NCBI GenBank assembly: GCA_002269645.1
Contig: NIVC01000406.1
Coordinates: 260,724 to 324,723 of the forward strand
DNA length: 64,000 nt
DNA from: Macrostomum lignano
Taxonomy: Eukaryota
Reading direction: 5' to 3'
Part shown: one piece after another, positions 14,601 through 64,000 of the stretch
How the letters are laid out: each line of letters begins with the position of its first letter
How positions within the stretch are numbered: position 1 is the first letter of the stretch
The notes under the pieces: model-generated
Told to the model about the DNA's origin: nothing
The model's database searches: none
What the model saw: the letters and a program-made list of their open reading frames with translations, nothing else
Program-made: the position numbers and the translations under genes

Positions 14601-15097
14601 CTGAGAGTCGCCCTCCAGTCTCACTGAGAGTCGCCCTCCAGTCTCACTGAGAGTCGCCCTCCAGTCTCACTGAGAGTCGCCCTCCAGTCTCACTGAGAGT
14701 CGCCCTCCAGTCTCACTGAGAGTCGCCCTCCAGTCTCACTGAGAGTCGCCCTTCAGTCTCACTGAGAGTCGCCCGATCCGCTCCGCAGGGCACGAGCCGA
14801 CCCTCGCACTATCACGTGCTGTGGGACGATAACCGGTTCACGGCTGACGAGCTGCAGGTGCTGACGTACCAGCTGTGCCACACCTACGTCCGCTGCACCC
14901 GCTCCGTGAGCATCCCGGCCCCAGCCTACTATGCTCACCTGGTGGCCTTTCGAGCTCGCTACCACCTGGTTGAGAAGGAGATCGACTCGGGCGAGGGCTC
15001 GCAGAAGAGCGGCAACTCTGACGAGCGGACCCCCACGGCAATGCTGCGGGCGGTCACGGTGCACCCGGAGACCATGCGGGTGATGTACTTTGCCTGA
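5618..15097 (+). CDS. AGO2: Argonaute (AGO clade, miRNA/siRNA type), ~970 aa, 9 coding exons
   Basis: Exons 5618-5726 (inferred; ends A|GTAAGT and joins TG at 8321 to give in-frame ATG), 8321-8922, 10108-10443, 10542-10814, 10922-11134, 12312-12692, 13213-13662, 14079-14318, 14789-15097. All GT-AG and in frame, 2913 nt total. N/L1 ([18 protein letters not shown]), PAZ ([17 protein letters not shown]), MID ([14 protein letters not shown]), PIWI ([33 protein letters not shown]-stop). The symbol means AGO1/2-type, not strict orthology. Confidence 0.97.
6709..7314. mobile_element. MITE-like element in AGO intron 1 (8-bp TSD)
   Basis: Direct repeat gtggaagc at 6701-6708 and 7315-7322. A 30-bp inverted repeat at 6716-6745 and 7278-7307 has one mismatch. 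The interior is AT-rich. Confidence 0.7.
8949..10061. repeat. 40-bp minisatellite (~28 copies) filling AGO intron 2
   Basis: Unit ggctagattagcaatccattctattcctgcatccatgata. Confidence 0.97.
11353..12205. repeat. 21-bp minisatellite (~40 copies) in AGO intron 5
   Basis: Unit ggttgtgggaattcctgtcag; explains the long repetitive ORFs at 11300-12513. Confidence 0.95.
12805..13095 (+). mobile_element. tRNA-derived SINE in AGO intron 6
   Basis: A-box-like tagcctagtggttaga and B-box-like gtttcgattc. The core gtgtccttgagcaagacacttaactc is shared with copies at ~1.3 kb and ~52.6 kb. Confidence 0.75.
13768..14008. repeat. 20/21-bp alternating minisatellite in AGO intron 7
   Basis: Units ggaaaccccggtcgcctgct and ggaaaccctggatgacttt. 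Confidence 0.9.
14343..14773. repeat. 23/25-bp minisatellite (~18 copies) in AGO intron 8
   Basis: Unit ccctccagtct(ct)cactgagagtcg; the longer variant contains the palindrome ctctca-c-tgagag. Confidence 0.95.
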
Positions 15098-22200: not shown

Positions 22201-22221
22201 CTGCATGCTCAGCTGGTCCAT
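16232..22221 (-). CDS. ARHGEF10: Rho guanine nucleotide exchange factor 10-like (DH, PH-like, coiled coil, WD40-like propeller), ~1239 aa
   Basis: Exons 22221-21352, 21107-20403, 19392-18859, 17842-16232, all phase-0 GT-AG. DH domain motifs RRKVFESLLATEASYLASL and LVRPVQRFPQLLLVVKDLLKYT. Family-type motifs YNSLHSLLHDHAVLVKI and LALQPENNAAW...PLLVG. Propeller LWVGTSVG. The true 5' end may be further upstream (acceptor at 22276). Confidence 0.9.
17880..18800. repeat. ~33-36-bp minisatellite in ARHGEF10 intron 3
   Basis: Unit tagcaaatgtacatctgcggctattttctctcccc with variants. Confidence 0.95.
19700..20260. repeat. 21-bp minisatellite in ARHGEF10 intron 2
   Basis: Unit ggcgccaaaatgagtgcctgc. 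Confidence 0.95.
21130..21345. repeat. (TAC/TGC/TAT) trinucleotide microsatellite in ARHGEF10 intron 1
   Basis: ctactgctactgctattg runs lying between the donor (21351) and acceptor (21108). Confidence 0.92.
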
Positions 22222-22763
22222 TGGCTCGGTTTGTACTGTGGCTGGCCGGCTGACTTTCCACTCCGAGCTGCCCGCCTGCCAGTTTAAAAACGGGGCTCTA
22301 TCTGGGGCCAGCGATCAGTAGATAAGCGGGTGCGCGCGCCAGGTACGAATCTTGTAGCCATGGATAGTGTGTTCCAAAATGCTAGCCTTGAAAGTCGGGC
22401 TTTTGCATTAAGGCAAATGCGCTGTGTTGCTTGTGCCTCTCGCAGCCCTGCTTATCCTCCCCTGTTATCTGCCTGTCTGCCTGCCTCAACTTCATCCTGA
22501 TTTTCGCAACGTTTTCCGCTGACAATAACAAACTAAATAATTGAATGACTACCCGATCTGGCCTACTGAGTTGGGCAATTGTCAGTAGTATATATTGAAA
22601 ACTGATTTTCAATTTCTTCTGTGGGGGCAAAATTTTCCGTGCTTTTTTATAGGCACTCATTTAAGCATGTCCTGGCCTTTTCGTGAGATGCATTGAGAGC
22701 GAATATTAAGATTGAAAGAAAAGGGAGATACGATGTTAAAAAGTGGTCATTAAAGGGACATGA

Positions 22764-24387
22764 GTTAGAGAAGTAGTCAGTAGAGATCGAGACAGGGGTT
22801 GGACAAGTAGTCAGTAGAGGGAGACAGGGGTTAGAGAAGTAGTAAGTAGAGGGAGACAGGGGTTAGAGAAGTAGTAAGTAGAGGGAGACAGGGGTTAGAG
22901 AAGTAGTAAGTAGAGGGAGACAGGGGTTAGAGAAGTAGTAAGTAGAGGGAGACAGGGGTTAGAGAAGTAGTAAGTAGAGGGAGACAGGGGTTAGAGAAGT
23001 AGTCAGTAGAGGGAGACAGGGGTTAGAGAAGTAGTCAGTAGAGGGAGACAGGGTTAGAGAAGTAGTCAGTAGAGATCGAGACAGGGGTTGGACAAGTAGT
23101 CAGTAGAGGGAGACAGGGGTTAGAGAAGTAGTAAGTAGAGGGAGACAGGGGTTAGAGAAGTAGTAAGTAGAGGGAGACAGGGGTTAGAGAAGTAGTAAGT
23201 AGAGGGAGACAGGGGTTAGAGAAGTAGTAAGTAGAGGGAGACAGGGGTTAGAGAAGTAGTAAGTAGAGGGAGACAGGGGTTAGAGAAGTAGTAAGTAGAG
23301 GGAGACAGGGGTTAGAGAAGTAGTAAGTAGAGGGAGACAGGGGTTAGAGAAGTAGTCAGTAGAGGGAGACAGGGGTTAGAGAAGTAGTCAGTAGAGGGAG
23401 ACAGGGGTTAGAGAAGTAGTAAGTAGAGGGAGACAGGGGTTAGAGAAGTAGTCAGTAGAGGGAGACAGGGGTTAGAGAAGTAGTAAGTAGAGGGAGACAG
23501 GGGTTAGAGAAGTAGTAAGTAGAGGGAGACAGGGGTTAGAGAAGTAGTCAGTAGAGGGAGACAGGGGTTAGAGAAGTAGTCAGTAGAGGGAGACAGGGGT
23601 TAGAGAAGTAGTCAGTAGAGGGAGACAGGGTTAGAGAAGTAGTCAGTAGAGGGAGACAGGGTTAGAGAAGTAGTCAGTAGAGGGAGACAGGGTTAGAGAA
23701 GAAGTAAGTAGAGGGAGACAGGGTTAGAAAAGTAGTCAGTAGAGGGAGACAGGGTTAGAGAAGTAGTCAGTAGAGAGAGACAGGGGTTAGAGAAGTAGTC
23801 AGTAGAGGGAGACAGGGGTTAAGAGAAGTAGTCAGTAGAGGGAGACAGGGTTAGAGAAGTAGTCAGTAGAGGGAGACAGGGGTTAGAAAAGTAGTCAGTA
23901 GAGGGAGACAGGGTTAGAGAAGAAGTAAGTAGAGGGAGACAGGGGTTAGAGATGTAGTCAGTAGAGGGAGACAGGGTTAGAGAAGTAGTCAGTAGAGAGA
24001 GACAGGGGTTAGAGAAGTAGTCAGTAGAGGGAGACAGGGTTAGAGAAGTAGTCAGTAGAGGGAGACAGGGGTTAGAGAAGTAGTCAGTAGAGATCGAGAC
24101 AGGGGTTGGACAAGTAGTCAGTAGAGGGAGACAGGGGTTAGAGAAGAAGTCAGTAGAGGGAGACAGGGGTTAGAGAAGTAGTCAGTAGAGGGAGACAGGG
24201 GTTGGACAAGTAGTCAGTAGAGGGAGACAGGGGTTAGAGAAGTAGTCAGTAGAGGGAGACAGGGGTTAGAGAAGTAGTCAGTAGAGGGAGACAGGGTTAG
24301 AGAAGTAGTCAGTAGAGGGAGACAGGGTTAGAGAAGTAGTCAGTAGAAGGAGACTGGGTTAGAGAAGTAGTCAGTAGAGGGAGACAG
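22764..24387. repeat. 31/32-bp purine-rich minisatellite (~50 copies)
   Basis: Unit ttagagaagtagtcagtagagggagacagggg. Confidence 0.97.
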
Positions 24388-29113: not shown

Positions 29114-30240
29114 TTAGACATGTAGAGTGTGAAATATGCTGTAAAATTAGACATGTAGAGTGCGAAATGCGCTGTCAAATTAGACATGTAGAGTGCGAAA
29201 TGCGCTGTCAAATTAGACATGTAGAGTGCGAAATGCGCTGTCAACTTGGACATGTAGAGTGTGAAATGCGCTGTCAAATTAGACATGTAGAGTGCGAAAT
29301 GCGCTGTCAACTTAGACATGTAGAGTGTGAAATGTGCTGTCAACTTAGACATGTAGAGTGTGAAATGTGCTGTCAACTTAGACATGCATAGAGTGTGAAA
29401 TGTGCTGTCAACTTAGACATGTAGAGTGTGAAATGTGCTGTCAACTTAGACATGCATAGAGTGTGAAATGCGCTGTCAAATTAGACACGTAGAGTGTGAA
29501 ATGCGCTGTCAAATTAGACACGTAGAGTGTGAAATGCGCTGTCAAATTAGACATGTATAGAGTGGGAAATGCGCTGCCAAATTAGACATGTAGAGTGTGA
29601 AATGCGCTGTCAAATTAGACATGTATAGAGTGTGAAATGCGCTGTCAAATTAGACATGTGTAGAGTGTGAAATGCGCTGTCAAATTAGACATGTAGAGTG
29701 TGAAATGCGCTGTCAAATTAAACATGTAGAGTGTGAAATGCGCTGTCAAATTAGACATGTACGAGCGTAGAGTGTGAAATGCGCTGTCAAATTAGACATG
29801 TATAGAGTGTGAAATGCGCTGTCAAATTAGACATGCATAGAGTGTGAAATGCGCTGTCAAATTAGACATGTAGAGTGTGAAATGCGCTGTCAACTTAGAC
29901 ATGTACGAGCGTAGAGTGTGAAATGCGCTGTCAAATCAGACATGTATAGAGTGTGAAATGCGCTGTCAAATTAGACATGCATAGAGTGGGAAATGCGCTG
30001 TCAAATTAGACATGTAGAGTGTGAAGTGCGCTGTCAAATTAGACATGCATAGAGTGTGAAGTGCGCTGTCAAATTAGACATGCATAGAGTGTGAAATGCG
30101 CTGTCAAATTAGACATGCATAGAGTGTGAAGTGCGCTGTCAAATTAGACATGCATGGAGTGTGAAATGCGCTGTCAAATTAGACATGTAGAGTGTGAAAT
30201 GCGCTGTCAAATTAGACTTGTAGAGTGTCAAATGCGCTGT
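29114..30240. repeat. 33/35-bp minisatellite (~33 copies)
   Basis: Unit tagacatgtagagtgtgaaatgcgctgtcaaat. Confidence 0.96.
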
Positions 30241-32565: not shown

Positions 32566-34044
32566 TCAGCCCAGTCGCACCGGCCCCAGGTCGCAGAGCA
32601 GCTCAGTCAAGTCGCTGACGGCAGCAGATGACACGCAGGTCAGCTCGTCCGCCTGCGGCACCGCTGATTCCGAGTCCTGACTGTCGGGCTGCCGCTGCTC
32701 CTGCAGTGCTGGAACTGAAATATTGCGATAGACTTGTTCCATTCAAGTCTGCTTGCACTGACGAATTCTCTGCCTTCCGCCTGTCTCCCTTCCCTCCCCG
32801 CCTGTCTCCCTTCCCTCCCCGCCTGTCTCCCTTCCCCCCTGCCTGTCTCCCTTCCCTCCCCACCTGTCTCCCTTCCCTCCCCACCTGTCTCCCTTCCCTC
32901 CCCACCTGTCACCCTTCCCTCCCCACCTGTCTCCTTTCCCTCCCCACCTGTCACCCTTCCCTCCCCACCTGTCTCCCTTCCCTCCCCACCTGTCTCCCTT
33001 CCCTCCCCGCCTGTCTCCCTTCCCTCCCCACCTGTCTCCCTTCCCTCCCCACCTGTCTCCCTTCCCTCCCCACCTGTCTCCCTTTCCTCCCCACCTGTCT
33101 CCCTTCCCTCCCCACCTGTCTCCCTTTCCTCCCCGCCTGTCTCCCTTCCCCCTGCCTGTCTCCCTTCCCTCCCCACCTGTCTCCCTTCCCTCCCCACCTG
33201 TCTCCCTTCCCTCCCCACCTGTCTCCCTTCCCTCCCCGCCTGTCTCCCTTCCCCCCTGCCTGTCTCCCTTCCCTCTCCGCCTGTCTCCCTTCCCTCCCCA
33301 CCTGTCTCCCTTCCCTCCCCACCTGTCTCCCTTTCCTCCCCGCCTGTCTCCCTTCCCCCCTGCCTGTCTCCCTTCCCTCCCCACCTGTCTCCCTTCCCTC
33401 CCCACCTGTCTCCCTTCCTCCCCACCTGTCTCCCTTCCCTCCCCGCCTGTCTCCCTTCCCCCTGCCTGTCTCCCTTCCCTCTCCGCCTGTCTCCCTTCCC
33501 TCCCCGCCTGTCTCCCTTCCCTCCCCACCTGTCTCCCTTCCCTCCCCGCCTGTCTCCCTTCCCTCCCCGCCTGTCTTCCTCCCCTCCCCGCCTGTCTCCC
33601 TTCCCTCCCCGCCTGTCTCCCTTCCCTCCCCGCCTGTCTCCCTTCCCTTCCCGCCTGTCTCCCTTCCCTCCCCGCCTGTCTCCCTTCCCTCCCCGCCTGT
33701 CTCTCCCCTCTGCTCAGCTCCTTCACCCTTCTCTCCCTGCCCCTCACCGCTCTCAGGCGCCATCACGCAGTCAGGTGAGACGCAAAAGTCCACCAGACGC
33801 TCAAGAAAGTCGGCGACGTCCTCGGTGGTGTCGCCACCAGGCTCCTGGAATTGGAGAGATACGATGGTTTGCAGAGTAACGAATCTATTAATGTTTTAGA
33901 CTATCAAATGCTACTTTGAGCAGCTGAGCTCACCGAGTTGGATGAGACTGGCGGCAGCATGTTCTTCAGCTTGCGCAGCGTCTTCATGAGCTGACGTCGA
34001 GATGGCCGACGGTAGACGGGAATCCTTGATGCGTCAATTGTCAT
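32566..34044 (-). CDS. Small 3-coding-exon protein (118 aa), divergent helix-loop-helix-like
   Basis: GCCACCATG at 34044; exons 34044-33934, 33844-33748, 32714-32566 with GTGAG donors, CAG acceptors and matching phases (357 nt). Product: MTIDASRIPVYRRPSRRQLMKTLRKLKNMLPPVSSNSEPGGDTTEDVADFLERLVDFCVSPDC...LG. The gene structure is better supported than the HLH call. Confidence 0.72.
32777..33705. repeat. 21-bp pyrimidine-rich minisatellite in intron 2 of the HLH-like gene
   Basis: Unit cctgtctcccttccctcccc(a/g), ~44 copies. Confidence 0.96.
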
Positions 34045-35577: not shown

Positions 35578-37327
35578 GAGACGAAAGTCTCAGCCATGCC
35601 ACGCTTCCTGGAGTCGCCCCCAAAATCTGCACAAAGAACTTCTTACGCAACCAGCTGGCCACGGGCACAGCAATAAGAAGATAGTTGTGAAGTGATTACT
35701 GATTACCTGGTCCGCCCGGTTACCCCCAAATCCCCGGAGCCCCCGCTGGGACACGCTGTCCCCGTGTTGTCAAACTTCATTCCCGACTCCCTGAAGGGAT
35801 CTGCAGGTTGCGCAGCCGGTCTGGCGTGGGTAAAATCCCCGGCTTTGATTTAATCACCCCTTGCCAGTTCCGCTGCAAGCACCACCCCCCCCCCCAGGGA
35901 TTCGAGTTAGTGATGAGGAGGGGGGTAATTTTGTTGCTTACACAAAACAAAACAAAACAGAATCCCCGCTTAGCAATCAGGGGATTGCGGTGGCGCCTCA
36001 GTTATCTTGTATCCAGGCGGAACCGGGCCTGCCGGAGCTGTAAATTATCTGTATTAGACAGGTAGGAGATTTGCCAGGGTCCACGCAGCACAGGTATTGC
36101 AGTTGCAGTTTCGGGTCCAGAGGCTTTCTTTAGATGGCTGTGGCGAGATACTCGCTCCAGACTCCCATTTCTAGCAAAGTGCCCCCGCCACTCGCAGTTC
36201 CTGTTCTCCCTTTATCTCCACCTGGGATCTCCATCAAACTCTTAACTGGGCCACAGCCTCTTTAGAGTCCCTCCCATCTTCGTAAAAACAGCCTTAAGGC
36301 ACTGGTGGGAGGTGGAGGTTTAACACTGGGGGTATAAATTATTACGAGTTTGAACCCAGGGGCCAGATGTCGCCCCAAGAGACTGCGGCAGTTCATAGGC
36401 ATCATGCCGTCCATTAAGTTGGGTGTTTTGGGTCTTTGTACCCAAAGTCTTTATTATCTATCCCTGCAGTTTCTGAACACGACACGACGCAGGCAACTCT
36501 TAGTCTTACAGCTTAATGCTATCTAGAACCTAGCCAGCTAAATTCTGAAAAAAGCAGAAAAATGCATTGTAAAACTTACCGAATTGTCAAACTGAGTGTA
36601 GGAGCGGCTTAGGCTTTATCAAAGGCAGAAGAAGTCTTAGTCGTTTGACTGCTTTGTTCTGGAATATTTATAAGACAAAGACCTCTAGCTGACTACTGGG
36701 GGACTGGCCCGCTCGCGTGCTTATTTTTCTACTTGTAGCCTCTCCTCAATCCTACTTCTGGTTCTGGAGCGGCGGGCGGGGTAGGGCGGATCTTATACTG
36801 ATTATACTGAAGTGGGGGGCAGAGAGGGGGTGGTGGGCGCTCCAGGACCCGAGCTGGGGTTGGCTGCGGGTGACCCCCACCCCCCAAGCGTCTATAGCGA
36901 GACAGATGTCCCGACCAGGGGGGGGGAGGGGTTGGGAGCTGCGGGGCCCCGGCCCCAACCGCCCCCAACCGACGCCAGGGGAGATGCGGGCGGCGGCCCT
37001 GCCAGCCTGTGACTCGACAGGCTGTAGCATCAAAGTCTCTTTAGTCTGCTTTTGAAAAATAAAAACAAGCAGGGTAAGAGGGGATCGGGGATTTATCCTT
37101 TTATTTAGCAGTGCGGAGCCGAGCGGGAGAGCCGGTCTGCAGATGGTGCAGTAAGCAGGTCACGCTGAGGCTTGTCCCCTATTCGGTTTACCAGAGCCCC
37201 AAAATAGCAGCAGGACTGGAGAACTTAAAAAAGAAAAAAACCATTTGCCCAGGGAGTTCCGGATTCTTTGCTGGCCTTGGTCTATATTCTTCTACAATAC
37301 AATGTTCACTCAATTCACGCCTCACGC

Positions 37328-38147
37328 CTCAATTCACAGCGCCATCCCCTCAATTCACAGCGCCATCCCCTCAATTCACAGCGCCATCCCCTCAATTCAC
37401 AGCGCCATCCCTCAATTCACAGCGCCATCCCTCAATTCACAGCGCCATCCCCTCAATTCACAGCGCCATCCCCTCAATTCACAGCGCCATCCCCTCAATT
37501 CACAGCGCCATCCCCTCAATTCACAGCGCCATCCCCTCAATTCACAGCGCCATCCCCTCAATTCACAGCGCCATCCCTCAATTCACAGCGCCATCCCCTC
37601 AATTCACAGCGCCATCCCCTCAATTCACAGCGCCATCCCCTCAATTCACAGCGCCATCCCTCAATTCACAGCGCCATCCCCTCAATTCACAGCGCCATCC
37701 CCTCAATTCACAGCGCCATCCCCTCAATTCACAGCGCCATCCCCTCAATTCACAGCGCCATCCCCTCAATTCACAGCGCCATCCCCTCAATTCACAGCGC
37801 CATCCCCTCAATTCACAGCGCCATCCCCTCAATTCACAGCGCCATCCCTCAATTCACAGCGCCATCCCCTCAATTCACAGCGCCATCCCCTCAATTCACA
37901 GCGCCATCCCCTCAATTCACAGCGCCATCCCCTCAATTCACAGCGCCATCCCCTCAATTCACAGCGCCATCCCTCAATTCACAGCGCCATCCCCTCAATT
38001 CACAGCGCCATCCCCTCAATTCACAGCGCCATCCCTCAATTCACAGCGCCATCCCCTCAATTCACAGCGCCATCCCCTCAATTCACAGCGCCATCCCCTC
38101 AATTCACAGCGCCATCCCTCAATTCACAGCGCCATCCCCTCAATTCA
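37328..38147. repeat. 21/22-bp minisatellite (~38 copies)
   Basis: Unit ctcaattcacagcgccatcc(c)c. Confidence 0.96.
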
Positions 38148-40879: not shown

Positions 40880-41865
40880 GGGGACAGGGGGACAGAGGGC
40901 ACAGGTGGACAGAGGGCACAGGGGGGACAGAGGGCACAGGGGGACACAGAGGGCACAGGGGGACAGAGGGCACAGGGGGACACAGAGGGCACAGGGGGGA
41001 CAGAGGGCACAGGGGGGACAGAGGGCACAGGGGGACACAGAGGGCACAGGGGGGACAGAGGGCACAGGGGGACACAGAGGGCACAGGGGACACAGAGGGC
41101 ACAGGGGGGACAGAGGGCACAGGGGGACAGAGGGCACAGGGGGACACAGAGGGCACAGGGGGACAGAGGGCACAGGGGGACACAGAGGGCACAGGGGGAC
41201 ACAGAGGGCACAGGGGGACACAGAGGGCACAGGGGGACACAGAGGGCACAGGGGGACAGAGGGCACAGGGGGACACAGAGGGCACAGGGGGACACAGAGG
41301 GCACAGGGGGACAGAGGGCACAGGGGGGACAGAGGGCACAGCTAGGGTACACAGAGGGCACAGGGGGGACAGAGGGCACAGGGGGACAGAGGGCACAGGG
41401 GGGACAGAGGGCACAGGGGGACACAGAGGGCACAGGGGGACACAGAGGGCACAGGGGGACACAGAGGGCACAGGGGGACAGAGGGCACAGGGGGGACAGA
41501 GGGCACAGGCGGGACACAGAGGGCACAGGGGGACACAGAGGGCACAGCGGGACACAGAGGGCACAGCGGGACACAGAGGGCACAGGGGGACAGAGGGCAC
41601 AGGGACACAGAGGGCACAGGGGGACACAGAGGGCACAGGGGGACACAGAGGGCACAGGGGGACACAGAGGGCACAGGGGGACAGAGGGCACAGGGACACA
41701 GAGGGCACAGGGGGGACACAGAGGGCACAGGGGGGACAGAGGGCACAGGGGGGACAGAGGGCACAGGGGGACAGAGGGCACAGGGGGACACAGAGGGCAC
41801 AGGGGGGACAGAGGGCACAGGGGGACACAGAGGGCACAGGGGGGACAGAGGGCACAGGGGGGACA
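40880..41865. repeat. G-rich 18-21-bp minisatellite
   Basis: Unit gggg(g)gac(ac)agagggcaca with variable G-run. Confidence 0.95.
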
Positions 41866-42540: not shown

Positions 42541-43635
42541 TCAGGTAGCTGTGACGGCGGGCCCTGAAACGGTCGAAGTTTTCCCTGTGTAGGTGGAGCC
42601 CGCGCGGCCCCGGCCGCCGCCCGGGTTGCCGAAGCAGCGGTCGAGGCGGAACGTGGCCACGAAGTTGGCGCGGAACCCCTGGCCCATGAAGTAGGCCATC
42701 CAGTTGAAGGCGTTATTCATAAACAGTAGCGCGTTCAGGTACTCAAAGATGCGATTCCGATCTTTGAGGGGTATCCAGTCCAAGGCCCCAAATGTCTCAG
42801 TGGCGCTGAGCAGGCTCCATGGGAGCGTGAACATCAGGAAGTTGACGTTGAGAATGACCAGCACCAGGCTGAGCCGAATGGCGCGACTCTTCCTCTTGTC
42901 GTCGCCGTCGTTCGTCTCGCCGAGGCCGCGGGCGCTGCGCAGCAGCATGACGCAGATCAGCGTGGTGCCCAGCAGCAGCAGGACGGCCAGCATCAGGCGG
43001 CCAACATAGAGCTCGTACTGCGTGTAAAATATGTAATACGCATCATCATCGACTACACTCACGTCTCGAAGCTCCGGATCCCACTCAATCAGGTAGATGG
43101 TCAGGGCGGGGAAGGACACGGTCAGGAGCAGAACGATGGCTAGCAAGATGGCGCTGTTTCGTCGATTCATCAGCTGCTTGGCCTTCAACGGAAAACAGAC
43201 AGCGACGGCGCGGTCGACTGTGAGGCCCAGCTGCAAAAACGGAGCCCCGAACACCAACAGGTAAGTGAGGATGTAATAGATGCGCATCACTACAGCGCTC
43301 AGACTGCGCACCGGCCGATACCAGGACTGCGGATTCGTGACTAGGATAGTCGTGATCTCCAAGTAGTAGATTGGGCCCTGGGCCAAAAGGATCACAGTAT
43401 CGGTGGCGCTAATCATCAGCATGTAAAGCCGGCTGTTTCTAGGAAATGACTTTCTATTGGCAGCCGTGACGATAAAACAAGCGGCATTAAGAAAACCGCC
43501 GCTCAATACCAGGACTGGGAAGAGCCAAGAGAAGACGTGGCGAACGAAAAAGTTCCAGCTGGGATCCCAGTACCACGGCGTGTACTGGCCGGCTGCGCCG
43601 TTGCCTGTCGAGTCGTTGGCCGCAGAGGAATTCAT
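42541..43635 (-). CDS. Rhodopsin-family (class A) peptide-type GPCR, intronless, 364 aa
   Basis: Seven hydrophobic segments: TM1 GGFLN, TM2 ISATD, TM3 TVDRAVAVCFP, TM6 FTLPW, TM7 NNAFNWMAY. N-glycosylation sequons NSS and NDS in the N-terminus. Confidence 0.93.
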   Translation of the reverse strand: MNSSAANDSTGNGAAGQYTPWYWDPSWNFFVRHVFSWLFPVLVLSGGFLNAACFIVTAANRKSFPRNSRLYMLMISATDTVILLAQGPIYYLEITTILVTNPQSWYRPVRSLSAVVMRIYYILTYLLVFGAPFLQLGLTVDRAVAVCFPLKAKQLMNRRNSAILLAIVLLLTVSFPALTIYLIEWDPELRDVSVVDDDAYYIFYTQYELYVGRLMLAVLLLLGTTLICVMLLRSARGLGETNDGDDKRKSRAIRLSLVLVILNVNFLMFTLPWSLLSATETFGALDWIPLKDRNRIFEYLNALLFMNNAFNWMAYFMGQGFRANFVATFRLDRCFGNPGGGRGRAGSTYTGKTSTVSGPAVTAT

Positions 43636-45400
43636 GTATGCGCTGCGGGTTAATAATGTAAAATTAGCCTAGTCTCAGTTTTTAAAATGATGAAGTGTAG
43701 CAGCTGGGTACCTTGCTTCAATGGCTTAAATCGTGCATTAACTGCAATAGCTAGACTGTCGGCTCTGAGAGCATCTGCTCTTAAAATCAGGGAGCATAAA
43801 AATTCTTAGTGGAGCGCCTGCTAATGCGGGCAGGCAAATGCTTTTGGAGTATCTCTGCTATGCATGTTGGTTCTTGAAAAAGTCCAGCAGTTCAGAGTGT
43901 GCTGATCGAAATCATGTCACTGTTAGTAGCTTACCGGCTACACGGCTGTAGAGGACGGATAAATTTTTGATCCCATCGCTCAGGATTCTTGGGGATGAAA
44001 TTTATATACAAGCCCGGATTGAGTAGGTGGTGGGGCACACCGTGCGATCGCAGCATGTGCTGCATTCCCAAAGGAATTGTCTCCGATGGGTGTATCAAAG
44101 GATGCAGCTAAATTGGCTAACTGGAAAAGTGGCAGATGGATGGACAACTCAAAATTCAAAGCCACATTGCGGCTATCAAAGAAGCTTAAAAAGATTGGAA
44201 TGGGGCCGTATTTTTGGGCAGCTCATCAATAAATAAAATCTATGCCTAGAGGGTCCAGACTCTTTTAGGGGCCGCCAAATGCAGTTCTTTGATCGTTTGT
44301 TTATCCGCAGCAAAAAGGCTATTGGGATCGCGTGAGATGGTCTGGTCTTTGTTGTTCAGGCTGCCTTGCAACGGGATGGCTACGAATCATTGGACTCGAC
44401 GCTCCTGCTTGATGACTTCGCCTAAATCGACCCTCCCGCGTTTGGTGTGCCTTTTTGATTGCCTTCGGGTCATACATGGAGACAGGTCATCGAAGATTGG
44501 GTCATTGCTCTGGCGCCTAAGTTTAAATGCACACGTACTCGATACTCGTAAGTCGGGGCATCACGAACCCGAAATATCACAAACCTGAAAGTGTTAGCAG
44601 CGCCCAACGCTATTTTCGTTTTCGGAGTTGATTAGTTCGGATAGCTCGTATCTCGGGCTTGCGATATTTCGGTTTTTTACATTTCGGGTTTATGATTTCG
44701 GGCCTACCGCAGTTTCAATGTACACGTAAGTTAATTTTATTAGGGCAGATATGCTTTAAACAGTACATCAGTAGTTTTAGCTTGGAAAATGTTAATGGAT
44801 AGACAGAGAGTTGGGGAGTTTGCACCTGAGGGGATTAATATATCCACCTATTGAATTCTTGTTATAAATCTTTCAAAAAATAATCTCCTGGATTCCTTTC
44901 TCAATTCTTTAATCGCTAAACACTAGGATTAGGGAATCTCAGGAACCTGGTGGGCAGCAACCTACAAATTAAAGACCAGTTAGTCCACTAAGATAGATCA
45001 GAAATAAACCAGTAGCCAAAACCGCGAGAGGACTGCGACTGCATAATCGATTCTCTTACTGATGACTGAATTTACCTACGCGGTAAGAACCTGAGTTAGT
45101 TAGTAGCATTTTGCCATGTAGCCAAAATATTACTAGCCTTTTTCCAACCAGCCTACTAGTAAGTATTATAAACGAAATTTTAACAAACAACAAACAAGAA
45201 ATGGAAGAATTTTAATTTGCAATATCTCAATATGTACAACGTTTTCAAACATGTAGATAAGCACTCCATAAAATATCACTCTTTTATTACAAGTACGGTT
45301 ATGCTGGTAATTTCGAATAAAACCGAGCAAGTCGATAGAAACAGAAAGTTTAACAAGTCTTAATTATTTGGAGATTGTTTTCAAACTGTACTCTTACAGT

Positions 45401-45904
45401 TCAGCCGCCGTAGTTGCCCGTCACAATGAGCTGCACAGGGGGCGGGTTCGGGCTGGTCCTGCTGCCCAGTTCATCGCGCAGCCACATGTCATACAACAGC
45501 CGGGCGTCGTCATTCAGCGCCCCACCGCGTACGGTGAGGCCCCCGAAGTTGCCCTGCCACTGCCTGATGAGCTCCTTGAGTCGGCCGACCGTCTCCCACC
45601 TGGCCGCATGGACCTCGAACTCCCGACCGTCAGCTCGGCGAACCCTGACAGTCATGGCGTCCGGCAGGCTCTCTCCGGGCGCGAGGCGGCCCACCAGTCG
45701 CAGGTAGGACTCGGCCAAGGACTGCGCCTCCGACAGCAGGCCGGGCCGCGGTCGCCCTCCGGCCTGAAGCTCCGACTGCAGGTCCTGAGCTCGTCTCCGC
45801 TCGTTCTCAGCAGCCTCCGATGCAGGCCCTTTGGCGGCACTGCCGTCGGCTACGCTGGCAATGGCTCTACGGGTGAGTTGCTCGCTCTGCTGTCGGCTGG
45901 CCAT
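45401..45904 (-). CDS. Ubiquitin-like protein A (167 aa): N-terminal helical extension + Ubl domain ending YGG-stop
   Basis: Residues 84-167 (MTVRVRRADGREFEV...ETVGRLKELI...LTVRGGALNDD..LLYD...VQLIVTGNYGG) align by eye to ubiquitin MQIFVKTLTGK..DTIENVKAKI..LIFAGKQLED..LSD..LHLVLRLRGG. A paralog lies at 49840-50322. Confidence 0.8.
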   Translation of the reverse strand: MASRQQSEQLTRRAIASVADGSAAKGPASEAAENERRRAQDLQSELQAGGRPRPGLLSEAQSLAESYLRLVGRLAPGESLPDAMTVRVRRADGREFEVHAARWETVGRLKELIRQWQGNFGGLTVRGGALNDDARLLYDMWLRDELGSRTSPNPPPVQLIVTGNYGG

Positions 45905-45964
45905 GTCTCAATCTGTTGGAGCAGTCCGTGGATTTTACAGGGCCGAGCCATTGTGGCTGGCTGC

Positions 45965-46051
45965 TTTTATAGATGACAGTCTCCGGGGCTGCTGCGACTC
46001 TGTGTGTCGAAGTTCGAATCGGCTCTAGATGAGTCAGAGTTTTCGATTTCG
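45965..46051 (-). promoter_or_regulatory. Putative core promoter of Ubl-A: TATA, AP-1 and IRF-E/ISRE-like motif
   Basis: TATAAAA at 45971-45965 (-); TGAGTCA at 46030-46036; gttttcgatttcg at 46039-46051 (GAAA-NN-GAAA on -). Confidence 0.5.
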
Positions 46052-46256
46052 ATGCTAAGTTTAGCAGTGACGGTGTCAGTTTTTTAAAAAAAATCGTCAG
46101 TATGTGATCGTGCGTAGCCCTCCTATGCCTATTTTTGGATGAGAGATGCCGTTTGCTATTTCCTAGAAATGTTTTAGGAAAACGACAATTTCTTAGAAAC
46201 TGTTCGAAAAATTTGTGTAAAAATCCTCACTTCTATATTCAGCTTCTACACTTCAA

Positions 46257-46440
46257 GGGCCAGATAAATAATCAATGGCCTTGAGAGATGAGAGAAGAGA
46301 TAAGAGACAGAATAGGAGGAGAGAATAAAGGGATGAGAAGAGAGCTGAGAAGATTGAGCAGGCCGGATTGCTATTTTGAAGTTTGAAAGGACCCGAGGGC
46401 CGGATAGAGAGGCTTCGCGGCTGACATGTGGCCTGCGTGT
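46257..46440 (-). mobile_element. Partial hAT MITE copy (family of 26970-27449), reverse orientation
   Basis: The reverse complement contains gccacatgtcagccgcgaagcctctctatccggccctcgggtcc, which matches the MITE interior. Confidence 0.6.
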
Positions 46441-49116
46441 AGAATCTACAAGAATGCATCCATGAGACTACGAGTACAGCATCCAAGCCTTTCTACATGT
46501 ATAAGGCTGACCTCATGAGATAAATGATTTAAAAAATTCAATTCTACCAAGAACTGAAGGCGCCAAGCTCTGACGAATAAAAGTTTATTTTACTCGATTT
46601 GTTCTTTGAATGATTAGAGGATGTGATGAGGACGCACTTTTTCCCAAATCCCGCGCTAGCACATGGGCTCTAAACTTACTTGCCTACTAACAGTGGGCAA
46701 TGGGCATTTTTATCCTTTTTCTGCGAATTTTCATAGAATCTATACTAGATATAAAGTCTGGCCATACTAGTAGTCATAATAACATAGGCGCAGCTTTTTG
46801 GGTCATAAATCATCGCTTTCGAAGCTGATCTGACAGCCACCTGCGCCTGGGCGGTAGCTTTTTTCTCATCATTTTGACAGGCCATCAAGATTTATGAGGT
46901 CAGAGCCTATTGTTCGTGTTCACTCAAGCGTGTGACAGCTTTGACAGCTATGCGTTTTACCCCTAAAAGTACCTTGGGATTAGCGATTAGCGATTTCTCT
47001 TCATTATCTTCACTTTCTATTTAATAAGAGCTTTCTAATGTATATTTTTTCATTAATTTCTATCAATCCTACGCGAAAAGTCATAAATCATTTTGTTGCG
47101 ATTTTGAGTGATTTATGGCCGCACCTGTCATCTTTTTACAACCCTGTGGGAACTGATAGGATTTCTCGGTCACGTGATTCTGGGTAGCAACGAGCTTAGC
47201 CAATCAGAAAATTCGGCGCTCATTTTAACAAAACGGCTCAGCCAATCAGAATCGACGTGTTCCGTTATAACAAACTGCGGTCCAGTTGGCGGCTATTTAA
47301 ACCGGAGTTTTTGGCCCGCTCGGACGCAACTTCTTCTTACTTTGGCTCGGGCCCAGCGCGCAACTTCTGGTTCCCGGAGCACGACCGTCGTTTCTTGATC
47401 CCCGGATTGCAACTTCCCCCATCATCATCAAGGACGAGTCCCCCGGTCGACAGCAGCGAACATCCAGTTAAGAGCATCACCTGCTAGCTAACAGCGAAGA
47501 TTGTGACAGCATCATCCCGAGTCTACAGCTGCAGAACATCGAGCCGATTCGGTCACTGTGGAATACCTGGTCTCCGGCTGTTGAGTTTCTGATTGGTTGG
47601 GTGAGAGGCTACCTAGACTTGCTTGATTGGGTGATCCCTTTTCTGTCCCCTGTTGCAGTAGCTGAATTAGGCGCACACTTTTGCTCATTTTGTTCAGTAG
47701 TGCTGTTGCTGAGGCAGGAATCATTCAATAATACTGCTAGTAGTCTAAGACTCCAATTCAATCTAAAGTGTGAAGTGAACTAAGGAGAAGGTTAAATCTA
47801 ACAGTTATCTTTGTCGGCTTTATTTCTTTGTTCGCCGATGGCTCAGATGAGTAGCTAAGCTAGTAGGCGCCGGTCACAGTGGACCAATGGCAAGGCAGTT
47901 CTCAGTCAACCAATCTAACCAATCAGTGAGCAAAACTGCCAAAAGTGCAGAATCGGCGCCAGAGATGTACTTTGTGCACTCTAGGGTAGCCAAGCGGCTC
48001 GGGTAAATGAATCATGCGGTCTCTGAAGTTCGAGTTAGTCTATCATCAGCGCTATGAGAGGCTAGTTGGCGCGTTGAAGGCTAAAAGTACATATCTTCGT
48101 ATTTAGCAATGTAATAGTACATGTAGCTACCCCATAGACTCGCCACCGCAAGAATCCCCTGCACAAGTCCCCTCTGTACCTGCATGGCCAACGCGATCTA
48201 GTCCCAGCAGTGTCCCTTATCATCGGCTATGACTTCGAGATTGACAGCAAAAAGACACTAGTTGGCAGGTAAGTGCAAGGCCCCTTCTAGTCGGAAGCCC
48301 GATTTCGAGAGTCCCGGTGTGGTGAGCCAGGGCGCACGGGCTGGTGGCAGCAAGTTAGTTGATCTGCGGATTAGCTAATTTCTACTTTCAAAATTCTCCC
48401 TGCTCGTCTCTCGCTGTCCCTCTCTTAGCTATAGGACCTAGACTGCTCGCCACACGATCAAGCTACCATGGGGCTGACCATCTGACAGGAGTGGGGGGCC
48501 AGGTCTCTAATTGATTTATTTCTGAGCCTGAGGCCCGAAGGCTTCCCTAACAAGGAGCCCGAAGGTCGAAACCCATCAGATGGTTTAAAATATTGAAATT
48601 TTTCACCTTGTAGGCGTTTTGTAACGGCCGGAGGCAGTAAGCAGAAGTGTACGCTGCATGGCTTAACGCAGTGTTGCAGCTGCAGTCCAATTGTTCTATT
48701 TTTAGCACCCCGAAGGTTAAACAATTATTGTAGGTTGGATTTTCCAAGTTAGCCAAATGCCTCCTGCTCAGCAACTAAATATGTGGAATAAAAGATTAAC
48801 AACGCGTGGGAGTCAAAGACAATTTTTTAACTTCTTAGGATTTTTATTATTTGGTGGACTATAGTAAAATTTCTGTATATTTTCACACATGTCGTTTGAA
48901 GCATTTGGTGGTCGGGATTTTGATTATTTAGTAATTAATAGAAAGTTCATGAGTAAATAATAACAAGTTATTTATTGAATTTTCGGGCGAGCTTCTACAG
49001 TAAACCCGACTCGTACGTAAGCAGGAATTTAAATTCTTGAATAAGTCCATTATAAGAAATAGAACTTAAATATTGTTATAATCAGTAGATGTTCCGCAAA
49101 TCACAGTAGAAATCGC

Positions 49117-49494
49117 GGGCGAGAGAGCAAGCTGGTCTGGCGCAGCTGCCAGCGGCAGCCCCCGGGGTGACGTCGAGGAGGGTCAAAAAATCTTTTTGTC
49201 GGCCGCTTTCATTCGGCAGAAATCGAGAAGCGAAATTATTTCAATTAGAAAAATTAACGCGCGAGTTTTTTGGTTTGTCATACGGACAAAGTCGAGAGTA
49301 AATAGAGTATATAAGCAAGCATAAAATCAATCAAGGCCCCGTGTGGGCCAGCATGCAGTTTTACAGCAGCGGTGCTTTTGACAAATATGGGATAAATTCC
49401 GACGCAAGTTCCCGGAAGCCTTCCGTCTTCACCTGGTCGCCGTCGCCCCGGGGGCTGCCGCTCAACTGGGCCAGACCAGCTTGCTCTCTCGCCC
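49117..49494. mobile_element. MITE/foldback element with ~55-bp GC-rich inverted repeats
   Basis: gggcgagagagcaagctggtctggc..agcggcagcccccggggtgacg (from 49117) is near-perfectly complementary to 49441-49494. No TSD found. Confidence 0.65.
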
Positions 49495-49839
49495 CCAGAC
49501 CGCTACTAACCGATCTCATAGGCTACAGTTAGCTTAGCTAAAGTACATTTATAAGATATAGATGAACTCGTGTATTCAGGTCTTGCTATCGAAAATAGCA
49601 TCGCATAGCAACACAAAAACATGCACGAAACTCATCTAAATCTATATAAATGGGATGCTTCCGGCAGCCAGGTGAAGTTTCAGAAGCTCCAGGAGAAATG
49701 AGTCGGATTTTTTTCCCGCGGGATCATTTGGGACTTAAATATGTTTCCATACAGTTAGTTAAAGATCTCCGCTGCCATAAAGACTACTAGCAAAAAAGGG
49801 TAAAGCAAAAAAATTAGTTAACCGAGTGGCCAGCCAAGC

Positions 49840-50322
49840 TCATCCGCCGGCGTTGCGCACCGTGCTCTGCACTCTGGGCTGGCTGCCATTGGCAACCGTC
49901 AAGCTCCCCAGCTGGTTGCGCAGCCAAAGATCAAATAGTGGCTTGTCCTTGGCCACTGGCCGACCGTTCATGATGAGGCCGCCGCCGCCGATCCGCTCCT
50001 GAAGCCACTCCATGGTTTCCCAGCGGGGCACCGACACCTGGATCGGCCGCCCGTCAGTCCCGTGCACGCGGACCGACATGTTTCCCACCAGGCTCTCGTT
50101 CGGGGCCAGCCGACCGACTTGCCGAAGGTAGCTCTCGGCCACGGACTCGGCCTCGGACAGCAGGCCGGGACGCAGCTGGGGGCCAGCTTGGAGCTCCGCC
50201 TGGAGCTCGACAGCTCGTCTCCGCTCCTGCTCCAAGTGAGCGGCTTGGCCTGCGCTGCCATCAGCGATGCTGTCGATGGCCCTTCGAATGAGCTGCCGTC
50301 GTGCATTCTCCGGTGCTGACAT
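49840..50322 (-). CDS. Ubiquitin-like protein B (160 aa), paralog of Ubl-A, ending AGG-stop
   Basis: ATG at 50322 (the ORF-track start at 50394 is GTG). Shared blocks RRAI.S.ADGSA, ERRRA..LQ.ELQAG, RPGLLSEA.S.AESYLR.VGRLAP.ESL, M.VRV...DGR, RWET, L.D.WLR..LGS.T and terminal GG. Confidence 0.8.
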   Translation of the reverse strand: MSAPENARRQLIRRAIDSIADGSAGQAAHLEQERRRAVELQAELQAGPQLRPGLLSEAESVAESYLRQVGRLAPNESLVGNMSVRVHGTDGRPIQVSVPRWETMEWLQERIGGGGLIMNGRPVAKDKPLFDLWLRNQLGSLTVANGSQPRVQSTVRNAGG

Positions 50323-50411
50323 ATTTTTCTTTAAACAAGCAGACGTTTCAAGAGTTCTAGAAGTTGAAGCCTTGCACTCGCTTAGCTCTTCCACGGCATT
50401 TCCTTGCCGTG

Positions 50412-50442
50412 TTTATATAGGCTGTCGCCGTTTTCGATTTCG
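50412..50442 (-). promoter_or_regulatory. Putative core promoter of Ubl-B: TATA and IRF-E/ISRE-like motif
   Basis: TATATAAA at 50419-50412 (-); gttttcgatttcg at 50430-50442, identical to the 13-mer upstream of Ubl-A. Confidence 0.5.
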
Positions 50443-52835: not shown

Positions 52836-54164
52836 TTATACATAGGCTGCTCCGATAATCAAATCTATGCATGGCAGTTGACAAAGCACTAGGTATCTTT
52901 GTCAGGGTATGCCTAGCCCTGACAGAGTCAGCAGTAAAGTACCTCTTGTACTAGCTGGGGTCACTGAGGGCACAACAGGTTGCTTAGATAGACTAGGCTA
53001 CTGCAGCAATATTGCATTGTATTATTCATTGCTAATCTTGATATATTGTGTTAACATATTGTCAGTCTGTTATCCAAGGCAAGGCTCAGATTTCAACTTC
53101 TTACCTGCCTATCAGTGCACAGTTTTTTGCATATACTATAAGAGATTTCCTTCATATCTTTTCATTTTTTATTCTTCTATAAACAATCTCTTGATACATT
53201 TGCACTTTTTTAGTAACATTAAATATCATAATTAAAAAAATAAAGCAAATATTAAAAGCCATTGAGGCTTCATTTTATAGCACCACAGATTAATTTTAAA
53301 TACTCAAAATATAATCTCAATTCATAATAGGATAAAAATCAGTTCATATATTTATACTTGAAAAATCACAAAGATCTGTGACATTTGAAAATATATAATC
53401 AATATTTAGTTGGCTTTGTTTAATAGCAACAATCAAAAAGACAAGTATAAGAATATGTCAAAGTTGGGACATCATTTTTATTAAAACAATCAGTTTTTAT
53501 TGCAAAATAAGTAATTAACATGTAAAATAAACATTCTTTCTTCACTTGATGAACTTCACTTCACTTGATCATCAAAAAGTATAAGACAATCTCAATACTG
53601 AATAAGCACCAAAAACAATATAATGTAATTGAGAAGTGCATCTGTTTTATATAAACGGACCTCCTTGCATTTGAAGGACTTGATGTCTGATAGCCTGAAA
53701 GTATAAAGTGGATGCATGAAAATAAAGAGAATCAGTCATTTATTTTTAGGGTATATGGTTTTGTTGCATTTTGGTCTCATAGGTGATTTAATCACTAATT
53801 GGTGATGAATAGGACTTGCTGCTCTTATTCTAAGTGTTGGGCACCATTAATCAAAATCTTAACTTCCATTAATAGCAAAAGCGTTAGCATTAAAACAAAA
53901 AAACTTAACTTATTAACTCTTAATTTTGTTAAGTTAACTGATAATTGTTAATAAGCATTAATCCATTTTAAGTTAACACAGAAAATACAGAAATCTTACA
54001 CTTTTTCCAAAACAGACTTCCTTAATGTACTGTCTTTGCTTTTCCACCTTTTTAGCAAAACACAGAGGTCATCTAAGGGATTTACAAGCTAAAAAAGTAA
54101 TAAATAATAATTTTAAAAAACTTGAATGTATAATACTACTTCTTTTTCTCTTAGCTGCAGGGCT

Positions 54165-55170
54165 GTCCCAGAGGGGACACAGCGGGAAGGCGCGGGCGCC
54201 CATTCCGCTAATCCCTGAACGGCTGACGTGTCGCTATGGACAGAGGGTTGGTGCCACCCAGGGAGGTCCCCCAGTGTCGCCAGCAGCTATAGTGCTCTCT
54301 GGAAAGGAGAGTTCAGCCCTGCGGGTGGCCCGAAGGTAGCGCTTGAGCTGTTTAAAGTTTTTGGGTTTGCACGCTTCAGTAATAGATGTGTGTGGCCCGA
54401 GGTAAGTGAGTCTGGCCCGCGTGAAGGCAGGACAGATGCTGACGAAATGCTCAGCAGTTTCGTCACCTGAGTTGCAGAAACTACAGGTGGCGTTGGTGGC
54501 GTTGCCCTGCAGGTACTGGTGCCTGGAGAAGCAGCCGTGACCTGAGAGGGTCATGGTGGCAGCCCGGATGTCTCTGCGCGAGAGGCGCAAGAGGAGCTTC
54601 CGGAGCTGGTGAGAGGGCTGAGGGACAGCACCTCTGGATTGCCTGCAGTTTGTGCGGTTCGCCCAAGACGAGCGGTGCTGAGTCCTGATCCACGCTTTGA
54701 TGCGCGAGTCGATGACACAGCCAGGAATCGGGACAAGAGGTTTGGGGCCGAGAGAGGAGCCGGAGGCACCAACTTTTGCAAGGGTGTCAGCCAGCTCATT
54801 TCCTCGGATCCCCACATGCCCCGGAACCCACTTAAGGGTAATTTTGTTGGCGGAACCCAATACGTTGAGAAGTTTGATACAGTCGAGGACTGTAGCAGAG
54901 TTGGTGCTGCAGCCACTGATGGTGTGCAAGGCAGCTTGGCTGTCCGAATGGAAAATGATGTTCTTGCCAATAATGCCAGTGGCGAGAAGCTCTGCAGTGC
55001 AGGAGCTGATGGCCAGAACTTCATTTTGGAAAACACTGGAGTTGACCCCAGTGTATTGAGCGTGGGTAGCGATGACCCTCCCGTTCAGAAAGATTCCAAC
55101 ACCAAAGCCGGTGTTGGCTGACTGCTTAGAACTGTCAGTGTAGCAATGAAGCTCACCAAGGTTCCATTGG
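54165..55170 (-). mobile_element. 5'-truncated non-LTR retrotransposon (RNase H + C-terminal CCHC; I/LOA/Tad1-group)
   Basis: Open frame ~55165-54234: YTDSSK, FQNEVLAI, HSDSQAAL, WVPGHVGIRGNELAD (four RNase H acidic residues), then CSFCNSGDETAEHFVSIC, stop and a short 3'UTR. Confidence 0.9.
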
Positions 55171-55239
55171 TCATTGATGTGATATAGTACCCCCTAGGCA
55201 AGTGCAACCTGCACTGGAGCTATGCAACATTAATTTGAC

Positions 55240-62989: not shown

Positions 62990-64000
62990 ATGAAGATATC
63001 AATTTTATACTTTCTTTTGCTTCTCCTATGCAGCGATGCCAATGGCAATCCTCAACTCGGGGTTGCAGCTGGTACAGAATTTGAAGCTGGTATTACGGTT
63101 GAAGCAGGACAAGCAACAATGGACTCTACAGTGGAAGAAACAACACAGGAAACTGAAACGGAATCAACACAATTCGTCGATTCTTCGCCAAAAAGTACAG
63201 ACAGCAATTCAATCTCGCCGACAACTACAACCAGCGAGTCAATCTTGCCGACAACTACAGTCAGCGAGTCAATCTCGCCGACAACTACAACCAGCGAGTC
63301 AATCTCGCCGACAACTACAACCAGCGAGTCAATCTTGCCGACAACTACAACCAGCGAGTCAATATCGCCGACAACTACAGTCAGTGAGTCAATCTCACCG
63401 ACAACTACAACCAGCGAGTCAATATCGCCGACAACTACAACCAGCGAGTCAATCTCACCGACAACTACAACCAGCGAGTCAATCTCACCGACAACTACAA
63501 CCAGCGAGTCAATCTCACCGAAAACTACAACCAGCGAATCAATCTCACCGACAACTACAACCAGCGAGTCAATCTCACCGACAACTACAACCAGCGAGTC
63601 AATCTCACCGACAACTACAACCAGCGAGTCAATCTCACCGACAACTACAACCAGCGAGTCAATCTCACCGACAACTACAACCAGCGAGTCAATCTCACCG
63701 ACAACTACAACCAGACAGCCAACTCAAGGGACAAGCTCTGCTGACACAGCAACCACGGGCCCAGACGCAGGTGGAGGCGGTGGCATCCTGACGCCCAGTC
63801 AGCTAGCGGCTGTAGTTCTTGGATCGGTGCTGGTCCTCTCAGTCATCTTCGGCGTAGCGGTTGTGGTGATCCGCCGCCGCCGAAGCGAGGCCCGCTTCCG
63901 ACGACTCCGCTGCGCCGGCTACTTCGACGAAGAGGACGACGGCATAGTCGGACTTGGCGGCAGCGATCCGCCGTTGCCGCGAGTGCTGTTCGACGACCAG
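62990..64000 (+). CDS. Mucin-like type I transmembrane protein (3' end beyond the window)
   Basis: ATG at 62990: MKISILYFLLLLLCSDANG signal peptide; ~17 copies of the 10-aa repeat SISPTTTTSE; TM LAAVVLGSVLVLSVIFGVAVVVI followed by RRRR; acidic tail. No stop before the edge, so it is missing from the ORF track. Confidence 0.88.
   Translation, partial: MKISILYFLLLLLCSDANGNPQLGVAAGTEFEAGITVEAGQATMDSTVEETTQETETESTQFVDSSPKSTDSNSISPTTTTSESILPTTTVSESISPTTTTSESISPTTTTSESILPTTTTSESISPTTTVSESISPTTTTSESISPTTTTSESISPTTTTSESISPTTTTSESISPKTTTSESISPTTTTSESISPTTTTSESISPTTTTSESISPTTTTSESISPTTTTSESISPTTTTRQPTQGTSSADTATTGPDAGGGGGILTPSQLAAVVLGSVLVLSVIFGVAVVVIRRRRSEARFRRLRCAGYFDEEDDGIVGLGGSDPPLPRVLFDDQ
63209..63714 (+). 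repeat. 30-bp coding tandem repeat (~17 copies)
   Basis: Unit tcaatctcaccgacaactacaaccagcgag. Confidence 0.96.

Follow-up and report, generated by a model that had tools for sequence, protein, structure and literature searches.

Tandem genes of Macrostomum lignano encoding two-domain, ubiquitin-fold proteins that are credible candidates for a genus-restricted protein tag

Within a 64,000-nucleotide stretch of the genome of the flatworm Macrostomum lignano (contig NIVC01000406.1, positions 260,724 to 324,723 of the forward strand; referred to as the window), we analysed two neighbouring genes, A and B, whose products combine an N-terminal helical module with a ubiquitin-like (Ubl) C-terminal domain ending in Gly-Gly. 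Gene A (window positions 45401..45904, minus strand) has an uninterrupted coding sequence (CDS) for 167 amino acids (aa), of which the tail VTGNYGG is directly followed by a TGA stop codon (Gly-Gly codons at 45404-45409, stop at 45401-45403). Gene B (49840..50322, minus strand) likewise consists of a single uninterrupted CDS, for 160 aa, with VRNAGG-TGA at its end (Gly-Gly codons at 49843-49848, stop at 49840-49842). The mechanically called open reading frame (ORF) of gene B spans 49840-50394 and starts from a GTG, with the first ATG at 50322 yielding the 160-aa product; both the GenBank model (PAA58157.1 type) and the TATA box location favoured this ATG over the GTG at 50394 as the start. In assembly GCA_002269645.1, two contigs carry an annotated product that is identical to that of gene A at every residue.

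The original prediction had described A and B as intronless paralogs about 4 kb apart that share the stretch RPGLLSEA.S.AESYLR.VGRLAP, and each part of this description was borne out: both ORFs lie on the minus strand at a start-to-start distance of 4418 bp, both coding regions are free of introns, and the shared stretch was found in both proteins, which are 53% identical (BLASTP, E = 7e-44). A tandem segmental duplication with conserved flanks was rejected as the origin of the pair, as the two loci align over 198 bp of CDS only. Because no DNA-level alignment extends outside these 198 bp, the duplication appears to be old. In papers citing GCA_002269645.1, Mlig_3_7 is presented as the assembly of this neopolyploid flatworm; a homeologous or allelic copy of the window's locus (L002) is present on a second contig (L001) that is 96-98% identical. 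A stretch of ~1.95 kb between A and B (46624-48578) is missing from L001, so that the start distance between both genes is ~4.4 kb in the window vs ~2.5 kb on L001.

As judged from their substitution patterns, A and B are real genes under purifying selection. Between A and B, the proportions of nonsynonymous and synonymous differences were 0.30 (pN) and 0.59 (pS), corresponding to a ratio of nonsynonymous to synonymous rates (dN/dS) of 0.33 (chi-square p = 4e-8), while comparisons among A, B and a further family member termed D (see below) yielded dN/dS values of 0.25-0.37 at a synonymous divergence (dS) above 1. The copies of gene B on the two contigs displayed a dN/dS of 0.26, and those of gene A differed by a single synonymous substitution. 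Both genes are preceded by a TATA box on the minus strand, read from the sequence at 45964-45971 for gene A (TATAAAAG, 60 nt before the ATG) and at 50412-50419 for gene B (TATATAAA, 90 nt before the ATG), and gene A is followed by an AATAAA polyadenylation signal 113 nt past its stop codon (45283..45288, minus strand; read from the sequence). Moreover, the M. lignano annotation that holds both gene models rests on a genome-guided assembly of RNA-seq data (PMC5730564), so that a transcript probably underlies A and B, as inferred from the annotation.

These data bear on the possibility that A and B are not functional genes, but chance ORFs in GC-rich DNA or decaying retrocopies, or that they belong to a mobile element. 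The two ORFs do have a GC content of 66-68% within AT-richer surroundings, with retroelement fragments nearby and a long ORF antisense to gene A, and a retrocopy origin is conceivable because the coding regions of A and B are intronless while that of a paralog, C, has two introns. The significant purifying selection, the TATA box on each gene together with a shared promoter motif, the intact state of both genes at the same place on two diverged contigs, the presence of only three family loci in the annotated M. lignano proteome, and a fourth intact member from a separate data set nevertheless render this explanation extremely improbable. The antisense ORF (45368-45976, plus strand) encodes 202 aa and runs across all of gene A, with a shorter similar one over gene B; both were judged to be a side effect of the high GC content of the coding strand.

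The promoters of A and B could not be aligned with each other, save for a short block whose end corresponds to the motif CGAAATCGAAAAC. This motif is located at 46039..46051 (minus strand) before gene A and at 50430..50442 (minus strand) before gene B, in the latter case 10 nt upstream of the TATA box, and these are its only two matches in the 64-kb window (vs 0.07 expected). A conserved CGTCA half-site precedes the motif, which has also been kept on the second contig (L001 9855-9864 and 7427-7436) within otherwise unalignable promoters. CGAAATCGAAAAC fits the GAAANNGAAA core of IRF/ISRE (interferon-stimulated response element) sites, although by resemblance only; in planarians, only a diverged IRF3/4-like gene has been reported (PMC13563047). 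STAT/GAS-like TTCNNNGAA sites upstream of A, B and C were also considered but dropped, being unenriched in the window (22 vs 19.4 expected). The combination of TATA promoters, intronless coding regions and a shared promoter element suggests that A and B may form an inducible pair.

Word-indexed searches of 5.8 billion proteins, together with an exhaustive search using hidden Markov models, revealed four lineages only (A, B, C and D) and nothing beyond these and generic ubiquitins, in agreement with the lineage restriction that had been proposed for the pair. Paralog C of M. lignano (L003 10001-12164 on NIVC01002301.1; PAA62498.1, PAA59051.1 and UniProt A0A1I8H5E3) measures 189 aa when read from the first ATG in frame and is 25-28% identical to A. 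It possesses its own TATA box and two introns, one of which falls precisely where the helical module meets the Ubl domain, and it ends in GRCGSG-TGA. A signal peptide in the "partial" GenBank models of C was rejected, as the false hydrophobic N-terminus stems from translated 5′ untranslated region. Member D (P0068; L004 46-543, 165 aa) was found on a 1.3-kb Logan contig of SRR28338163 that ends just past an AATAAA signal, like a transcript. D shares 61% identity with B and 54% with A (dS 1.1-1.3, dN/dS 0.25-0.37), ends in VRNVGG-TGA, and probably originates from Macrostomum or a close relative. Among the papers of the library searched, none was found on this family in Macrostomum, nor any that mentions the locus tags or SRR28338163.

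The N-terminal module comprises residues 1-76 of A (45677..45904, minus strand), with helices at residues 2-20, 30-47 and 56-70 followed by a conserved linker (GRLAP), and residues 1-74 of B (50101..50322, minus strand; delineated by alignment with gene A). When this part of A was modelled alone with AlphaFold, a three-helix bundle was predicted with a predicted local distance difference test (pLDDT) score of 88 and a predicted template modelling (pTM) score of 0.74, supporting the earlier view that the module is helical and not of the Ubl type. The module had no Pfam match, and a Foldseek search against the PDB returned no relative with E < 1 (best E = 1.5, an Hsp70 lid).

The ubiquitin-fold domain was delimited at residues 83-167 of A (45404..45658, minus strand; tail TGNYGG) by AlphaFold, Foldseek and hhalign, and at residues 82-160 of B (49843..50079, minus strand; tail VRNAGG) by alignments with A, C, D and ubiquitin. 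In the model that AlphaFold produced for A from only two input sequences (mean pLDDT 66.5), strands at residues 83-89 and 95-101, a helix at 106-117, strands at 123-125 and 128-130, and a helix at 137-146 follow one another in the beta-beta-alpha-beta-beta-helix order of the beta-grasp. Foldseek against the PDB matched this model to ISG15 C-domains, ubiquitin variants and NEDD8 with a probability of 1.0 (E about 6e-4; template modelling (TM) scores of 0.66-0.77, normalised to the target), and against a viral structure library it returned ubiquitin-likes only. By hhalign, an alignment of the Ubl domains of the family matched an 8-sequence ubiquitin-family alignment at 95.6% probability (E = 1.1e-8) over 56 columns, spanning ubiquitin residues 1-59. 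Searched against 1.84 billion representative proteins, a profile built from A and B yielded polyubiquitins and multi-Ubl proteins with E-values down to 1e-12, in scores that are sums over repeats. With the whole-family profile, the PDB gave matches to single ubiquitin chains at E = 0.003-0.07, and those to NEDD8, ISG15 and UBL4A had E-values of about 0.03-0.05. Counterparts of ubiquitin Gly10, Thr22 and Gly47 are present in A, B, C and D, and A, B and D also retain the L-x-D motif of ubiquitin (around residues 56-58), in which C carries His for Asp. Relative to ubiquitin, an insertion of ~10 residues is located ahead of strand 5.

Pfam placed this domain less readily. Gene A scored 13.1 bits with the Pfam ubiquitin model (gathering cut-off 25.4), B and D had no ubiquitin-family match, and none was evident for C in the summary table; sub-threshold matches among the four reached E = 0.08 for ubiquitin and E = 0.24 for Ubiquitin_4. 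Matches to EACC1 (E = 0.016) and Spc29 (E = 0.004, one member) were taken as noise or generic similarity, and Prp3, the sole phmmer match of A among PDB sequences (E = 5.2), was rejected. One copy already bears the automatic UniProt name "Ubiquitin-like domain-containing protein", so the domain had been flagged by machine as ubiquitin-like. Fold and profile place the C-terminal half in the ubiquitin superfamily, and its score leaves it outside the Pfam ubiquitin family. The ubiquitin-like domain of the original prediction is supported by AlphaFold strand order, Foldseek, profile and hhalign, while its statement that the proteins were not recognised as ubiquitin, SUMO, NEDD8, URM1, ISG15 or FAT10 needs qualification: they are very diverged, but the fold is recognisable and the sequence family is that of ubiquitin, NEDD8 and ISG15.

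At the C-terminus, Gly-Gly directly before the stop codon was found not only in A and B but also in D and in five further allelic or homeologous copies. The terminal glycine codons differ synonymously (GGC GGC, GGC GGA and GGA GGC), and GG-stop has been kept among A, B and D even though their synonymous divergence is saturated. When all four tails (TGNYGG in A, VRNAGG in B, VRNVGG in D and GRCGSG in C) are considered, the terminal Gly and the stop position are conserved in 4/4 lineages, in the same register and down to 25% identity. Aligned from the C-terminal end, the tails of B, C and D match that of ubiquitin in length and carry Arg at the Arg72 position, while the tail of A is one residue longer. 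Read from these alignments, the stop codon immediately follows the residue equivalent to ubiquitin Gly76 and leaves the terminal Gly free, and this constant stop position is a stronger point than the conservation of GG itself. In composition, A, B and D have 11-13% arginine and no cysteine and are poor in lysine, with two lysines in A, two in B and none in D, none of them at a shared position; neighbouring genes of similar GC content at third codon positions (GC3) encode 1.9-5.3% lysine.

Together, these results firmly establish a small orphan family of real genes, which encode a three-helix bundle and, after it, a divergent ubiquitin-family domain that ends in a free Gly. As such, A and B are credible candidates for a genus-restricted protein tag. 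More specifically, we tentatively propose, at somewhat less than an even chance, that A and B are ready-made modifiers that are activated at their terminal Gly and attached whole to target proteins. In this proposal, A and B would be made ready to use, like FAT10 and URM1, with no need for a processing protease. A ubiquitin-activating enzyme (E1) would adenylate the terminal Gly, after which the entire 17-18 kDa protein would be transferred to target lysines and the helical bundle displayed on the target as a recognisable module. Given that A, B and D have no lysine in common, the proteins would act as mono-modifiers and not as chain formers.

A number of observations weigh against such conjugation. 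The chance of two conserved terminal glycines among A, B and D amounts to ~p = 0.14, so that GG conservation is statistically weak, given that 37% of the columns in the Ubl half are invariant anyway. Nor is GG universal in the family: its predicted conservation among homologs held for A, B and D, but not for paralog C, where Ser replaces the penultimate Gly (GSG-stop). The position of Ile44 of ubiquitin is occupied by Thr in A, and Arg42 is not conserved. The two halves of the protein also differ in constraint, with a dN/dS of 0.25 in the helical half vs 0.45 in the Ubl half, and the lower constraint on the latter would also fit a main function residing in the helical module. None of A-D reaches the Pfam ubiquitin threshold. 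Exposure of the tail is an assumption, because strand 5 and the tail of the A model (residues 142-167) have a pLDDT < 50 and a loop of ~10 residues precedes strand 5; the same low pLDDT might point to a flexible tail. Finally, as the original prediction had stated, no E1, conjugating (E2) or ligase (E3) enzyme was found in the window by Pfam scans of 30 long ORFs, in which short exons could be missed. As the genes of a eukaryotic pathway seldom cluster, little can be read into this lack of linked enzymes.

Several of these observations would also fit A and B being non-conjugated (type II) Ubl proteins, in which the helical bundle would bind a partner, the ubiquitin fold would act non-covalently (e.g. 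by docking to the proteasome or to ubiquitin receptors, or by regulating the bundle intramolecularly), and GG would be an inherited remnant retained for its structural role. The GSG end of paralog C, the Thr at the Ile44-patch position of A and the statistical weakness of GG conservation all point in this direction, as does the finding that the helical half and linker are the best conserved parts (50% invariant columns among A, B and D vs 37% in the Ubl half, next to the dN/dS values above). Most eukaryotic ubiquitin-fold domains are, moreover, not conjugated. However, type II Ubl domains are usually N-terminal or internal and do not stop at the Gly76 position, while in this family the stop follows right after the terminal Gly in all four lineages despite saturated synonymous divergence. 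We regard a type II role as the main rival to conjugation and as only slightly less probable.

The same C-terminus also recalls sulfur carriers of the URM1/MoaD type, since a free C-terminal GG on a beta-grasp is equally a hallmark of URM1, MoaD and ThiS. A and B would then be adenylated and thiocarboxylated at the terminal GG, with no modification of lysines. The sequence and fold matches nevertheless belong to the ubiquitin/NEDD8/ISG15 branch, and neither URM1, MoaD nor ThiS was among the matches listed (the best 50-60 of each Foldseek and profile search). Such carriers are furthermore ancient and widely conserved, in contrast to a family found in one genus, and a helical N-terminal bundle is foreign to them, which makes this explanation very improbable.

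Returning to conjugation, Macrostomum might even have evolved its own inducible, ready-made tag, analogous to vertebrate ISG15 or FAT10 but of another architecture (helical bundle plus ubiquitin fold), that responds to stress or infection via the IRF-like element and is activated by a canonical or lineage-specific E1. We consider this more elaborate scenario unlikely. If it were true, it would constitute an independent origin of immune-type ubiquitin-like conjugation in an invertebrate amenable to transgenesis, stable transgenesis having been established in M. lignano (PMC5730564). If A and B are conjugated in any form, they would represent a modifier of unseen architecture, in which a non-Ubl helical module is delivered by a ubiquitin fold, and their confinement to one flatworm genus would show that ubiquitin can still give rise to new modifiers in animals other than vertebrates. 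If they are not conjugated, they constitute an orphan ubiquitin-domain family that matters mainly for the annotation of the M. lignano genome.

The remainder of the window was surveyed with Pfam, which identified as neighbours an Argonaute gene, RhoGEF-PH-WD40 ORFs, an ankyrin-repeat ORF, a rhodopsin-type receptor, retroelement fragments, a concanavalin-like ORF and a mucin-like repeat protein; Rfam gave no match in the window. The Argonaute gene (8317-15094, plus strand) is split over at least 7 exon-like ORFs (ArgoN, L1, PAZ, Mid and three for Piwi), and minisatellites fill the introns of this gene, with repeat units of 40 bp (8949-10062), 21 bp (11352-12211) and 23 bp (14343-14774). The RhoGEF, PH and WD40 ORFs (16232-22314, minus strand) are arranged in the order of one ARHGEF10-like gene, broken by minisatellite arrays at 17878-18806 and 19693-20260. 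The whole window contains at least 16 long minisatellite arrays, with units of 16-42 bp and lengths of 0.3-1.6 kb each (e.g. 22757-24387, 29114-30240, 32777-33703, 37309-38147 and 40880-41861), which account for many of its long multi-frame ORFs and for the strong local swings in GC skew.

At 1.8 kb downstream of gene A lies an intronless ORF for a 364-aa seven-transmembrane receptor of the rhodopsin family (42541-43635, minus strand), which is conserved on L001 but absent from the called genes there. A second stretch of the window that is missing from L001 (~54141-55182) carries a retroelement RNase H ORF (54237-55193, minus strand). At the window's edges, the first ORF fragment (1-300) resembles a carboxyltransferase subunit, as recognised by eye only, and a 251-aa ORF (63036-63791) contains a mucin-like Ser/Thr decapeptide repeat (Pfam Decapeptide, below threshold).

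Among known systems, type II proteins such as BAG1 and UBL4A resemble A and B in pairing a ubiquitin fold with a helical module, and UBL4A was a weak profile match (E = 0.05). In BAG1/UBL4A-type proteins, however, the Ubl domain is N-terminal and lacks an exposed terminal GG, unlike in A and B, and neither sequence nor fold searches matched the helical module of A and B to any domain, BAG included. With ubiquitin and NEDD8 (PF00240), A and B share a homologous beta-grasp, and B, C and D have kept the terminal Gly and the tail length. They differ from these in being only ~20-25% identical, with A below the gathering score, in the ~10-residue insertion before strand 5, and in an ~80-residue helical N-terminal extension; nor are they encoded as fusions or polyproteins.

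ISG15 provided, with its C-domains, the best structural matches of the A model (E = 5.7e-4, TM 0.66-0.71), and it shares with A and B the two-domain organisation of ~17 kDa and the terminal GG, while the GAAANNGAAA-type promoter element of A and B resembles an ISRE, again by resemblance only. A and B nonetheless lack both the tandem Ubl domains and the LRLRGG tail, are only ~21% identical to it, and cannot be considered ISG15 orthologs because the ISG15 matches score no better than those of ubiquitin and NEDD8. FAT10 (UBD) is a fast-evolving, lineage-restricted and inducible modifier that is, to our knowledge, limited to vertebrates. It resembles A and B in being a two-domain protein of ~18 kDa with a ubiquitin-type C-domain and a C-terminal Gly-Gly that is free at translation, and the mechanism of its diglycine has been described (PMC4359146). 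Its N-domain, however, is a second ubiquitin fold and not a predicted three-helix bundle, its tail reads CYCIGG instead of TGNYGG (A) or VRNAGG (B), and its relationship to A and B in sequence is no closer than that of the general ubiquitin family. Since A and B have neither the tandem-Ubl architecture nor the tail motifs, they are members of neither the FAT10 nor the ISG15 family; by analogy, though, they would work most like FAT10, or like ISG15.

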